A DNA stretch of 64,000 nt from Trichosphaerium sp. ATCC 40318 (Eukaryota; Protista; Tubulinea), in contig JALMLS010000228.1 in NCBI GenBank assembly GCA_038496445.1, forward strand, positions 248,001 through 312,000. The letters run 5' to 3'. Positions within the stretch are counted from its first letter, which is position 1, and every line of letters begins with the position of its first letter. Of the stretch, positions 5,175 to 8,988 are shown one piece after another. A program made the position numbers and the translations under genes. Below the pieces are notes generated by a model, which saw only the letters and a list, made by a program, of their open reading frames with translations, did no database searches and was not told where the DNA came from.

Positions 5175-5560
5175 CTTGAGATAAAAAAAAAAGAGGCAAA
5201 GAACTTGTACATTTTCTTTTCTACAACGTTATAACTCAATGGTGAGAAACGTGCAAAAAAATACATACACGTGTAAATTGATAAAGTTGTGTTATTGTTG
5301 GTTTGGTGCTAAAGCGAAAACTTGAATTGTAAATCGTGTGCAGCTTTTGTTTTTGAAATAAAAGACTTTCACTCGTAGAGTGATGGAGATGGTACAACCT
5401 AAGAAACAAGGTTGTAATTCCTTGTCGGCATCTGTAAGTACCTATTGGCTGTATCACGTGCGTGTACATTAAGCCAGGATATGGTTCATTGAATTTCTTT
5501 TTTTTCAAAACATCCCTAAAAGTTTCAAAAAACCAAACAAGCAGTTGGATAACAACACGT

Positions 5561-7740
5561 ATGGGAAACATATTTAACCGTAAGAGGAGAACGCAGGCGC
5601 CAGTTAGCGACATAAGCGCTTCAGAAGAGAGCGAAAAAGCATTAGACATTGATTCAGGCCACTCAATCAGTATAGTATGTATTGTTAGCACATTAGAATT
5701 AAAATTAACGGGTGTACAGAGAACTTTGACAGGAAAAACTTTATGGATAACAGTTGAACCTTCTAATACTGTTGAAGAGCTTAAACAGATGATCTATGAC
5801 GTAGACGGTGTCCCAGAGGACCAACAGCGTCTTATATACGCCGGTACGCGTATTTTTTTAAAGAACTAAAGCAATATCGTTCAAACGCTTATTAACACAG
5901 GTAAACAACTTGAGGACGGGCGAACGATGGAAGAATACCATCTTACAGGTAAAAACAAAAAAAGCCGATCATTCAACTAAAAAATACTCTTTCGCAGATT
6001 CTTTCAGTAAGCTTCAGAACGAAGCCCAGATAGCTGCTGGTGCTCTTATTAGTCTAAGAGACGAAGACCTTTACACTGGCCCCGAAGTTCACTTAGTACT
6101 CCGTCTACGTGGAGGTATGTACCATGAGACGAGCGGGCGTAATGATATGCATAACATTGCAACACGTGAGCCACGAACTCGCAAAGTTAAAGAGGTTAAT
6201 GTACGATCAAAAAAACCCCAGTTGAAACTTTTTTTTGTTGACTCTTTGTCTTTAGAAGAATTTCATCTATGTAAAGACAGAAACAGGGTCTGTACTGGAA
6301 ATACCTGTATCGAAAGCAAGGATATCAGGAAAGGAAATTAGAAGTACGTGTAGGAACAAGGTTTTATGTGGAGGGTAAAAACATTTAATGGATCTTACCC
6401 GAAAAAAAAACCCCTTATTCATTAACACCCTTTACAGAACTTGTGAAAAAGAAGTTACACATCGAATCAATGTCAGTTGATGAGCTTAAAAAAATGGCAT
6501 TTGATACAGTACAAGAGGATTGACAAGAAAGCAAAGAGGTTCGTTTCTAAACCAAAAATTAAAAAAAATTCGGGGTTTGCTTAAACTGGTTGTTGTAGAG
6601 CAATTCTGATAACAAATTGCTTGATATACCGAAAGAAGATCTAAAAGTAAGCCTACTAATAAGAAACAAAATAAATAATAAACCTACTTTTATTGCACAC
6701 GTGTTGAAACAATGAAGAGATTTTATAACTCATCTTTTTTTGTAGAAAATGTTGATCAAAGAGAACGAGCTTCGAAAGTCTCCAGAAACACAGGCTCTAT
6801 ACAAAAAAGCAGAAATGACAGATGAAACAGATTGGATGGAAGTTACAGATATGTTACAAAGACAGATACTCCGTGACTATGGTCTTGATGAAGTAGACTT
6901 GGAAAAAGGTAAGCAAAATATAGCTCCAAGTATTTCAAACTGACGGCTTCGCTTCTAGGTTTATTCTCACTCAGGACCGCTACAAAGCGGTTTCCAGAAC
7001 TATCTGATATCCCTCTTTATGTAAAGTACAACAGAGCAAGACAAGGTGACCTAACTGTTGGTGATCCTGCACCAAATGTTCCATTGGTTACTCTTGATGA
7101 AGTGAAAGTACATAGTCTTTGACCTTGCTTGTTTATTTTCTAATTGTTGTAGTGCGACTTGCACGATTACTGTAGTTCATCTAGACCTTTATTGTTAATG
7201 GCAGGATCATACACGTGACCACCATTGCGCGGTTTGATGAAGCATATTGAAATTCTTTTCAATGATTTCAAAGACCGTGCAGACTTTCTTTGCGTTTATA
7301 TTCTCGAAGCGCATGCTCAAGACGAATGGTATTCATATCTCTTTCTTCATAAAATGAACATAAGAACTATAGTTACTAAGATATTTGTAGGCCTATTTCA
7401 AGCGCAAGATTTCATGATGGCGAACCAGTCATTTTGATTCAACAAAAAACAATATCTGAGCGTGTTGAGACAGCCAAAGCATTCGTAAAACGTTATGAAA
7501 CTGAAGTACCTGTTGTATGTGATACTATGACCAACGAGTTTGAGAAAAAATATGCTCCTTGGCCTGTAAGGTTCTACATAGTAAACAACAGGAAAATGGC
7601 TCACATTGAAAATCCAGAGGTAAAAAAATGTCTTTTTTCTTTTTTGCCACGTGGTTCAACCATGTACTCACTTTTTCTTAAAGGGATGCACGTATTATAT
7701 CGGTCGTGTACGTAAAGCGTTAGAATCCATACTGGATTAG
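5561..7740 (+). CDS. Ubiquitin-like domain fused to an iodothyronine-deiodinase-like selenoprotein (Sec UGA at 7216-7218)
   Basis: Exons 5561-5674, 5720-5843, 5901-5948, 5998-~6200, 6256-6343, 6438-6508 (or 6538), 6599-6646, 6746-6908, 6959-7107, 7153-7328, 7391-7619, 7684-7740. Ubiquitin motifs: RTLTGK, QQRLIYAGKQLEDGRT, HLVLRLRGG. Deiodinase motifs: GDPAPN, AGSYT-U-PPLR, ADFLCVYILEAHAQDEWP, VVCDTMTN, YAPWPVRFYIV. Confidence 0.85.
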
Positions 7741-7753
7741 ATATCTTGAAAAT

Positions 7754-7837
7754 CACATGAACAAGAATGAAGCTTCCTTTGGCAAAGCCTTTTTTACAAG
7801 GCACCAAGGTAATTATGCTGACATACATTTGTTTGTG
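7754..7837 (+). promoter_or_regulatory. SECIS element (form II) in the 3' UTR of the deiodinase-like gene
   Basis: ATGAA core (7767), 12-nt helix II arm, unpaired AAA (7784-86), apical helix GCCTT/AAGGC, 3' arm CCAAGG...GC, TGAC (7819), and helix I CATGAACAA/TTGTTTGTG. Starts about 25 nt after the TAG; AATAAA lies near 7861. Confidence 0.72.
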
Positions 7838-7989
7838 TATCAAGTTGTACTTGTAGTATAAATAAATAAACACATTGTGGACGGCGTAAAGCTGATCAAA
7901 AACTCCACAAACAGCATTATTTAGCAATTTAACATACACTTTACAAATCTTAATAACACAAAAGAGTACTAAGTTCCTTACGTAATTAG

Positions 7990-8988
7990 CTAAAGCCTCC
8001 AACAACAGTAGGTTTTAGGGTAGTGTTTATCCAAAATACAGCAATAAAGCCGTCTTATATGCGCTCCTTTCAGTGCTCTCAACCCAACACGTGTCACATT
8101 AGTGTGGCTAAGATAGATAGTATGAACACCAACCAATGCTTTGACACCTTCATCAGTTACATATGTGTAATGAAGATTTATGGTGTGAACGCCAGCTAGT
8201 GCTTTGATGCCTTCATCTGTAGCACAAGTCTGAGAAAGATTTATGGTATGCACACCAGCTAGTGCTTTGATACCTTCATCTGTCACACAAGTGTACCGAA
8301 GATTTATTGTATGAACACCAACCAACGCTTTTACACCTTTATCTGTCACACGTGTATCACATAGATTTATAGTATGCGCGCCAGCCAATGCTTTGACTCC
8401 TTTATCTGTTACACAAGTGCGACAAAGATCAATTGTATGAACACCAGCCAATAATATGATACTTTCATCAGTCACACTTGTATAGGAAAGATTAATTGTA
8501 TGTGCACCAACCAACGCTTTGACACCTTTGTCTGTCACACAAGTATCAGAAAGATCAATTTTATGCACACCAGCAAGTGCAATGATGCCTTTATCTGTCA
8601 CGTTAGTCCGAGAAAGGTCTATTGTATGGACACCTGCCAGTGCTTGTACAAGTTTTTGTTGAACATGACGAATACAAATAGAAATAGAAAAGGCGTCCTT
8701 GAGGTGCTTTCTGAATTGTCTTGCTGTTATAATGTAATAAATCCTTACATTACACGATCTTAAATAAAAAGGGTAGTTCTGTTCGTGATATCTTTCAAGT
8801 TGTTCTTGGTTTTCTATTTTAATAATGCGTGCTGGTGGTGTATAGTCTAAGTAATCTTGTGCTATATCCAAAAACAGTGTACATGTTAGTCTTACATACA
8901 GACTGTAGCTTTTCGGAACACAACGAAGGATTCTAACCAATATTTCGTATGGTAGAGCACCAAGCAATCCAGCTGTGTGGGTTTCCAT
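7990..8988 (-). CDS. Intronless F-box + 21-aa LRR protein
   Basis: N-terminal LPYEILVRILRCVP...LTCTLF (F-box), then 9 tandem GVHTIxLxxTxVTDxGxKALx repeats (63-nt unit). Confidence 0.9.
   Translation of the reverse strand: METHTAGLLGALPYEILVRILRCVPKSYSLYVRLTCTLFLDIAQDYLDYTPPARIIKIENQEQLERYHEQNYPFYLRSCNVRIYYIITARQFRKHLKDAFSISICIRHVQQKLVQALAGVHTIDLSRTNVTDKGIIALAGVHKIDLSDTCVTDKGVKALVGAHTINLSYTSVTDESIILLAGVHTIDLCRTCVTDKGVKALAGAHTINLCDTRVTDKGVKALVGVHTINLRYTCVTDEGIKALAGVHTINLSQTCATDEGIKALAGVHTINLHYTYVTDEGVKALVGVHTIYLSHTNVTRVGLRALKGAHIRRLYCCILDKHYPKTYCCWRL

Follow-up and report, generated by a model that had tools for sequence, protein, structure and literature searches.

In the stretch of Trichosphaerium sp. 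ATCC 40318 DNA analysed here (64,000 nucleotides, positions 248,001 to 312,000 of contig JALMLS010000228.1, forward strand; hereafter the window, whose own numbering is used throughout), a gene of twelve exons (5561-7740, + strand) carries a ubiquitin part and a deiodinase-like part on a single spliced RNA and in a single frame, with one in-frame TGA between them. We lean towards the reading in which this junction UGA is decoded as selenocysteine (Sec) by means of the same selenocysteine insertion sequence (SECIS) as the active-site UGA: termination at the junction would give a 220-residue ubiquitin-like protein, and read-through a 499-residue fusion containing two Sec. The window is AT-rich (GC 0.37), contains many introns and is eukaryotic; sequence searches were made with exon pieces or homologues of the gene, rather than with the whole spliced protein.

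The RNA evidence consists of contigs from four public runs (X1-X4, from three studies) placed on 5300-8000. These contigs are spliced, and therefore RNA-derived; their eleven introns are all GT..AG, and the spliced gene is read as 499 codons, two of which, 221 and 368, are TGA. One X4 contig (record 11) joins the second, ubiquitin-encoding exon (from 5772) through exon 6 into exon 7, and one X1 contig (record 1) continues from 6140, just past the terminal GG of the ubiquitin, through every later junction to 7826; X2 (record 4) covers 6438-7029 and X3 (record 6) covers 5551-6532. No contig end and no separate start lie between the ubiquitin and deiodinase parts in the X1-X4 contigs. An earlier reading of the window, made from its letters alone (the sequence-only reading), had named separate transcripts, with a polyA before about 6600 and an independent start at ATG 6749, as what would speak against it; the contigs give these no support, although contigs drop rare variants and extra, shorter transcripts starting downstream of 6538 are possible.

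The same reading had assumed one spliced frame, and this has to be given up. It needs a donor at 6508, which is used in no contig of the four runs; X1, X2 and X4 use the donor at 6538, joined to 6599, so that the mature RNA retains the in-frame TGA at 6521-6523 (VQED-TGA-QESKE), which is present in the RNA of X1, X2, X3 and X4. The proposed ubiquitin-deiodinase fusion holds in so far as both parts lie on one spliced RNA, but the frame is interrupted, and there is a fusion only if UGA 6521 is recoded or skipped.

The first module extends over exons 1 to 6. Its 5' untranslated region (UTR) is 5534-5560 as far as RNA reaches (the X2 contig starts at 5534, X3 aligns from 5551), and ATG 5561 is the first ATG. 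In X3, 40 letters upstream of 5551 are unlike the window (5511-5551), which may point to a further 5' UTR exon upstream or to variation between strains; there is no ATG in the 30 letters of this unmatched stretch that are visible. Exon 1 (5561-5674) encodes the MGNIFNRKRR start, an acidic and Ser-rich stretch and the first ubiquitin strand. Its junction to exon 2 (5674/5720, skipping 45) is found in X2 and X3, and the intron at 5675-5719 interrupts what had been taken for the first coding stretch. Exon 2 (5720-5843; junction 5843/5901 in three runs) encodes the ubiquitin core (TLTGKT ... DQQRLIYAG), and exon 3 (5901-5948; junctions in X2, X3 and X4) the KQLEDGRT... segment. Exon 4 (5998-6200), through which the RNA reads, encodes a 30-residue insertion in the ubiquitin, its end HLVLRLRGG (LRLRGG at 6099-6116) and the motif MYHETSGR (6117-6140). 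A splice at 6115, directly after the GG, is ruled out, as the RNA continues through the GG into MYHETSGR.

The piece 5720-5842 of exon 2 alone matches PF00240 with 41.2 bits (cut-off 25.4; E 1.4e-10). By this match the ubiquitin part is a true ubiquitin-family domain; its insertion falls in the beta4-beta5 loop, before the last strand, and its LRLRGG is intact, as the sequence-only reading had it. A second, partial ubiquitin-like segment noticed there, FIYVKTETG...SVDELKKM, is also recovered: exon 5 (6256-6343; junctions 6200/6256 and 6343/6438) encodes its beta-hairpin (NFIYVKTETGSVLEIPV), and exon 6 (6438-6538) the ESMSVDELKKM helix, followed by the junction TGA and five further codons. The N-terminus MGNIFNRKRR indeed fits the loose N-myristoylation pattern G-x-x-x-[STAGCN]; this pattern, which the relative L011 described below lacks, is the one ground for a membrane tethering of the protein, which is possible.

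The second module extends from exon 8 to exon 12. PF00837 matches three consecutive exon pieces collinearly (profile positions 93-113, 115-149 and 155-214); the piece 7392-7619 alone scores 29.0 bits (cut-off 27), and the two neighbouring pieces 22.8 and 11.2 bits. As the matches end at 113 and resume at 115, TGA 7216-7218 falls on profile position 114, the Sec position of the family. Exon 8 (6746-6908) encodes the start of a helical N-domain (MLIKENELR ... DWMEVT ... LQRQI) and exon 9 (6959-7107) its remainder (IPLYVKYNRARQGDL), both supported by the family alignment and by the RNA junctions. Exon 10 (7153-7328) carries the active site AGSYT-TGA-PPLRG and YILEAHAQDEW, exon 11 (7391-7619) the C-terminal half of the thioredoxin fold with APWPVRFYIV, both within the PF00837 match, and exon 12 (7684-7740) ends with the stop TAG at 7738-7740, its junction 7619/7684 being present in all four runs. 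The helical domain and the deiodinase domain with AGSYT-UGA-PP that had been read from the letters are thus borne out.

Homologous loci are matched by tblastn of the spliced deiodinase domain with E values of 1e-30 to 1e-42. TGA occupies the same active-site place in 13 homologous loci and in L011, and P0065 has Cys there. The family motifs YILEAHAQDEWP and APWPVRFYIV are present, and alignment A2 shows no variation at E, A, H, A, D, W, W, P and R. When exon 11 was searched with HMMER, without a profile, 344 library proteins matched at E<=0.001, most of which are short fragments beginning about 30 residues ahead of the match; such starts are expected, because gene callers break at a Sec UGA. 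Full-length relatives share the helical N-domain (ML-x-x-ENELR ... DWMEVT ... LQ ... FG ... YVKYNRA) before the deiodinase fold, and exon 8 is 53% identical to residues 228-274 of P0047 (E 1e-15). By profile, active-site position and motifs, this part is a member of the deiodinase family. A vertebrate-type N-terminal transmembrane anchor was not found in the residues upstream of the fold, which form a soluble-looking helical domain common to protist and viral relatives, and the part is therefore filed as deiodinase-like and not as a DIO1-3 orthologue. Its peroxiredoxin-like deiodinase fold would make it a redox or dehalogenating selenoenzyme.

A SECIS had been placed after the gene, and a candidate is found within the 3' UTR, which the RNA contigs cover to at least 7826. 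It is a type-II SECIS-like hairpin at 7755-7838 (+), with helix I formed by 7755-7765/7828-7838 and AUGA 7767-7770 facing GA 7820-7821; its upper part comprises helix II, an unpaired AAA (7784-7786) separated from the AUGA by 13 nt, and a 5-bp mini-stem (7787-7791/7798-7802). Dictyostelium selenoproteins, the deiodinase homologue included, are reported to have type-II SECIS with unpaired AAA (PMC2375036). The 3' UTRs of three relatives, L001, L002 and L005, show the same succession of AUGA, 12-14 nt, AAA and, further 3', GA; the mini-stem after the AAA folds in L001 and L005, and does not in the constrained fold of L002. MAFFT with RNAalifold on the four SECIS candidates gave a useless alignment, with 0 pairs predicted. 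Strain or species differences are seen in the hairpin (7747, 7775-7776, 7789): X2 has TC->AT in the internal loop of helix II, and X1 and X2 have an extra T in the mini-stem loop, the AUGA, AAA and GA elements being unchanged. No tRNA is present within the window.

The gene thus consists of one mRNA and one frame, in which a 220-codon ubiquitin-type module, the UGA at codon 221 and a 278-codon deiodinase-like module follow each other. Between TGA 6521 and ATG 6749 there are 22 codons, with no stop and no other ATG, and exon 7 (6599-6646; junctions in X1, X2 and X4) supplies 16 stop-free in-frame codons of them (SNSDNKLLDIPKEDLK). The IPKEDLKK of exon 7 aligns with IPRDKLLR of L005 and with coding sequence of L003, P0065 and P0128, upstream of the conserved ML-x-x-ENELR. 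Among the relatives that extend upstream, the 7-8 residues just ahead of the conserved Met are kept, and here it is exon 7 that encodes them. This conservation, and the alignment with stretches that are coding in relatives, suggest that exon 7 is translated.

An independent parallel is offered by the transcript L011 of a distant protist, an intron-free contig of 1614 nt with a GC of 0.54; its enzyme part and that of the window share 33% identity. One frame encodes in succession ubiquitin, MYHETSGRDGF, an acidic linker, a TGA, 26 codons, MLEREEELR and a deiodinase-like domain with a Sec TGA. Its ubiquitin carries a large insertion at the same loop as the window gene, and its first open reading frame (ORF) comprises 220 codons, as in the window gene. 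This ORF is 95% identical to the EukProt transcriptome peptide P0158, both ending at the same residue; no contig on record encodes exactly P0158. L011 ends 54 nt past its stop, so that the SECIS region lies outside the contig. In the coding region of this locus (L011:55-1557, - strand), the junction TGA is directly followed by a Cys codon, and a third in-frame TGA, in a U-A-P-C context, occurs inside the enzyme domain, before the TAG stop. The junction TGA lies 23 positions upstream of the conserved Met in the window and 27 in L011 (then Cys), and L005 has Cys residues at 24-35, in linkers that do not align reliably between L005, L011 and the window.

Other relatives have the fusion without interruption. 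P0047 (locus L001) has 228 additional N-terminal residues with a weak ubiquitin-like match; its ORF is continuous, its only TGA is that of the Sec site, and a clear type-II SECIS is present. In L005 the frame is open for at least 75 codons upstream. In L032 (4948-6300, + strand, of a 341-kb viral contig), a ubiquitin-like domain (Pfam 25.1 bits, just below the cut-off) and a ZZ-type zinc finger are fused N-terminal of the enzyme, with no stop between. When the N-terminal part and the middle part of P0047 were used as queries in word-based protein searches, only P0047 itself and P0151 came back. The latter, from an ENA metagenome, is a beta-propeller-type protein whose last 45 residues or so are nearly identical to the linker and N-domain start of P0047, and is most likely a chimeric assembly.

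Reading the junction UGA as Sec is favoured because two distant species share the frame, the junction TGA and stop-free linkers (22 and 26 codons), and also because the exon 7 residues are conserved and uninterrupted fusions exist (P0047, L005, L032). A rough estimate puts the chance of the shared layout at about 1e-3, using assumed odds for the frame (1/3), for TGA as the stop (1/4-1/3, from 4 of 16 window ORFs) and for a stop-free linker (about 0.3). TGA as an ordinary sense codon in this organism is ruled out, since 4 of the 16 long ORFs of the window end in TGA, and also because the Trichosphaerium sp. peptide P0152 (MMETSP0405), identical to the spliced translation over all its 159 residues, stops at ...VQED, immediately before the junction TGA, and because the catalytic TGA has a SECIS.

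Under the reading that we favour, ribosomes starting from AUG 5561 would meet UGA-221 first. Stopping there would yield a stand-alone ubiquitin-like protein, like the separate product of the giant viruses considered below; alternatively, Sec would be inserted at UGA-221 with the help of the same SECIS and translation would continue, a second Sec then being inserted at the active-site UGA (codon 368) to give the 499-residue fusion. A SECIS in the 3' UTR acts on the in-frame UGAs of the same mRNA, as established for multi-UGA selenoprotein mRNAs. The share of fusion would follow the efficiency of Sec decoding, i.e., the selenium supply, and the ubiquitin-like part would most likely target or regulate the enzyme, or be its partner or substrate.

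Several observations weigh against this reading. The linker around UGA-221 (VQED-U-QESKE) is acidic and probably disordered and has no Cys nearby, which makes it an unusual site for a functional selenocysteine. The junction UGAs of the window and of L011 align only to within about 8 residues, in a linker that is unalignable. Contigs leave room for transcripts starting downstream of 6538 or for a rare isoform using the 6508 donor. As to the hairpin, Rfam reports no SECIS in 3.6 kb, nor in a 166-base stretch of 3' UTR alone. Our first SECIS descriptor missed this candidate, the 3' side of its internal loop being 6 nt long, and our second was tuned after the candidate had been seen, so that its statistics (one match, the present site, in the 128 kb of the two window strands, against 7 in 2.56 Mb of shuffles) are supportive only. 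Finally, both halves occur as stand-alone proteins, the UGA has precisely the position expected of a plain stop, and peptide calls of the TransDecoder type (P0152, P0158) take it as a stop.

These last points lead to the strongest rival, which we judge rather unlikely: UGA-221 could be an ordinary stop, the gene yielding two separate proteins, a 220-residue ubiquitin-like one and a 278-residue selenoprotein from AUG 6749 reached by re-initiation or from an internal transcription start, and the shared frame would be a relic or a coincidence. The stand-alone P0022 and P0025 begin exactly at the Met equivalent to ATG 6749, while others reach further upstream; stand-alone proteins with the ubiquitin and MYHETSGR exist as well, and giant viruses have two separate genes. 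Such a stop nevertheless has to accommodate the frame, the TGA and the stop-free linkers shared by two distant species, with the low chance estimated above, and the fact that exon 7, which precedes the Met, aligns with stretches that are coding in relatives. Moreover, re-initiation after an ORF of 660 nt is inefficient in eukaryotes, and a true stop with six introns behind it would as a rule invite nonsense-mediated decay.

It is improbable that the fusion is made only from a minor isoform in which an in-frame donor at 6508 (GTACAA) skips the UGA, the major isoform giving the ubiquitin-like protein only. A GT does occur at 6509, exactly 30 nt upstream of the used donor, GTAC-type donors are found elsewhere in the gene, and a rare variant could be lost from contigs; however, the 6508/6599 junction is in no contig of the four runs, 6538/6599 is in three, and L011, an intron-free transcript contig, also retains the junction UGA. 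Least probable is that a recent nonsense mutation interrupted a fusion gene that had been continuous, with the deiodinase part no longer made from the locus: the uninterrupted fusions of relatives (P0047, L005, L032) would fit it, but the downstream part retains all family motifs, the Sec codon, correct splicing and the SECIS, the TGA is in the RNA of four runs from three studies, and a UGA also stands at this junction in L011 and P0158.

Whatever the fate of the junction codon, the link between ubiquitin and the deiodinase family proposed by the sequence-only reading recurs, both as fusions and as neighbouring genes of giant viruses. The viral-type contigs are IMG/VR giant virus metagenome-assembled genomes and AT-rich metagenome contigs. 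An enzyme-only search (alignment A2) gives six viral loci, including L027, which is the contig of L009 and L010. In four of the six (L027, L029, L030 and L031), a gene with Ub-MYHETSG[RK] or MFHEISGR lies at <=1.5 kb from the enzyme; of the remaining two, one is without a relevant flank and the other is L032, with its continuous fusion. The two genes are in tandem in L022, convergent in L006, where the ubiquitin-tail gene has two paralogues, and separated by about 1 kb in L009/L010.

All eight viral-type enzyme genes (L006:3003-3836, - strand; L009:3730-4563, + strand; L022:1176-1904, - strand; L028-L032, around 5500-6300) carry TGA at the Sec position. SECIS-like stems lie downstream of several of them; that of L031, for instance, shows AUGA, then a helix of 12 nt, AAA, a mini-stem and GA. 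These genes look like virus-encoded selenoproteins. In a tree of the enzyme domain, the AT-rich viral sequences form one well-supported clade, the eukaryote-type remainder being poorly resolved, and this tree left a sister relation of the two UGA-junction genes unresolved. As the association with ubiquitin is found on both sides of the viral/eukaryote split, it spans the deepest split sampled. Judged from these sequences, the association of a ubiquitin-type protein with the deiodinase-like enzyme is real and recurrent, and the two proteins very probably work together. Far more tentatively, and as a proposal that we rather doubt, protists and giant viruses could share a conserved system made up of these two proteins; in this amoeba and at least one other protist, the junction UGA would be a selenium-dependent switch between a free ubiquitin-like partner and a tethered enzyme, and the linker Sec, next to which L011 has a Cys, might also serve the active-site Sec as a mobile redox partner.

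The ubiquitin side of this association belongs to a family of its own, which we define as a ubiquitin domain directly followed by M-[YF]-H-E-[TI]-S-G-[RK], and designate Ub-GG-MYHETSGR. The window gene has this arrangement at 6099-6140, and the motif also occurs in P0153-P0156 and 20 further loci. P0153-P0156, retrieved with the exon-4 ORF, have MYHETSGR directly after LRLRGG as well, and motif pattern scans gave one giant-virus contig and 16 metagenome contigs; among the 20 loci are L029-L031, to which the enzyme gene had led rather than the motif. The 7-8 residues past the GG (MYHETSGR) are nearly invariant across the family, in front of otherwise unrelated tails. In AT-rich, giant-virus-like contigs, MYHETSGR is followed by a conserved stretch of roughly 25 residues. 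The GC-rich eukaryotic contigs L014, L020 and L023 have in this place a beta-hairpin/helix segment and then a helix with S-M-S/C-x-x-E-L, like exons 5-6. No Pfam model matches the tail after MYHETSGR.

Stand-alone proteins of this type are common. That of L023 (- strand, frame 2) ends at a TGA, the frame being open for 52 more codons, to the contig end. The viral genes are often tandem paralogue pairs (L006:1363-2890, L013, L025), whose members share an N-terminal domain of about 130 residues without a Pfam match.

An AlphaFold model of the relative L023, computed with an alignment of 23 family members, has a ubiquitin core with pLDDT (predicted local distance difference test) >90, a flexible RGG-MYHETSGR (pLDDT 49-68), a beta-beta-alpha segment at 61-76 and a helix at 80-94; a single-sequence model of P0152, with a pLDDT of 41, was too poor and was not used. 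As the MYHETSGR stretch is flexible in the L023 model, it would act as an exposed linear motif, and not as part of a fold, and the exposed GG-MYHETSGR junction is likely to be a processing or recognition site. A deubiquitinase cut after the GG is possible, being compatible with the exposed, flexible junction of the model. As MYHETSGR is nearly invariant, also in the members found independently (L029-L031), it suggests a specific recognition step beyond generic cleavage. If cut, the ubiquitin would keep a 36-residue N-terminal extension and the 30-residue insertion, which leaves its role as a conjugatable modifier unproven.

The gene can be compared with several known systems. The deiodinase-like selenoprotein of Dictyostelium discoideum is likewise an amoebozoan homologue with a UGA-encoded Sec and the type of SECIS described above; it differs, as compared by description, in that Lobanov et al. 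2007 (PMC2375036) mention no ubiquitin, fusion or second UGA. Vertebrate DIO1-3 (PF00837) share the thioredoxin/peroxiredoxin-like fold, G-S-x-T-Sec-P-P, EAH..D.W and the SECIS-dependent decoding of UGA, but their N-terminal membrane helix is absent here, a helical N-domain and a ubiquitin-type module standing in its stead. Vertebrate DIO2 is regulated by ubiquitin attached post-translationally, and not by an encoded ubiquitin. In polyubiquitin, UBA52 and RPS27A, a ubiquitin ending in LRLRGG is directly followed by another polypeptide, as here, and deubiquitinases cut after the GG; the window gene differs from them by its N-terminal extension, its 30-residue loop insertion and a partner that opens with the near-invariant MYHETSGR.

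With regard to recoding, an early UGA in a multi-UGA selenoprotein mRNA can end translation and give truncated products. In mRNAs of the selenoprotein P type, as described in PMC5133445, several UGAs are redefined as Sec, under regulation by selenium availability. Compared to selenoprotein P, the first UGA is here at the boundary of modules that are separate elsewhere, and the choice between stop and read-through would yield two different functional products. A pairing of the same general kind is reportedly found in yeast, where the ubiquitin-fold protein Urm1 works with its target Ahp1, a redox enzyme of peroxiredoxin fold; this is an analogy only, as Urm1 and Ahp1 have no sequence relationship to the proteins described here, Urm1 does not resemble ubiquitin in sequence, and the two are neither fused nor encoded adjacent to each other.

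In the literature, we found no paper with the MYHETSGR motif, none combining deiodinase, ubiquitin-like domain, selenoprotein and fusion, in agreement with the earlier statement that no such fusion had been described, and none on Trichosphaerium with selenocysteine or on a giant-virus deiodinase; the Trichosphaerium genome paper mentions neither ubiquitin nor selenoproteins. Ub-GG-MYHETSGR thus appears to be an undescribed ubiquitin family, with a nearly invariant motif after the GG. The gene itself combines known kinds of element, namely selenoprotein recoding and ubiquitin fusion; its predicted architecture is well supported, and its protein product and function are unproven. At its 3' side, a 332-codon ORF with leucine-rich repeats (7990-8988, - strand; GVHTINLS.T.VTD.G.KAL) converges on the 3' end of the gene.

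To our knowledge, the amoebal homologues of deiodinases have remained without a known function since their discovery. Their recurrent link to ubiquitin, whether by a fusion across a UGA, a fusion without stop, a ubiquitin-like domain with a ZZ finger or neighbouring viral genes, provides a concrete functional lead, on which the amoebal deiodinase-like selenoenzymes would act within or on the ubiquitin system. Giant-virus contigs are also shown to carry deiodinase-like genes with TGA at the Sec position and SECIS-like hairpins. Finally, if the reading favoured here is true, Sec recoding would be put to a new use at the junction UGA, with one mRNA giving either of two proteins in a ratio set by selenium.

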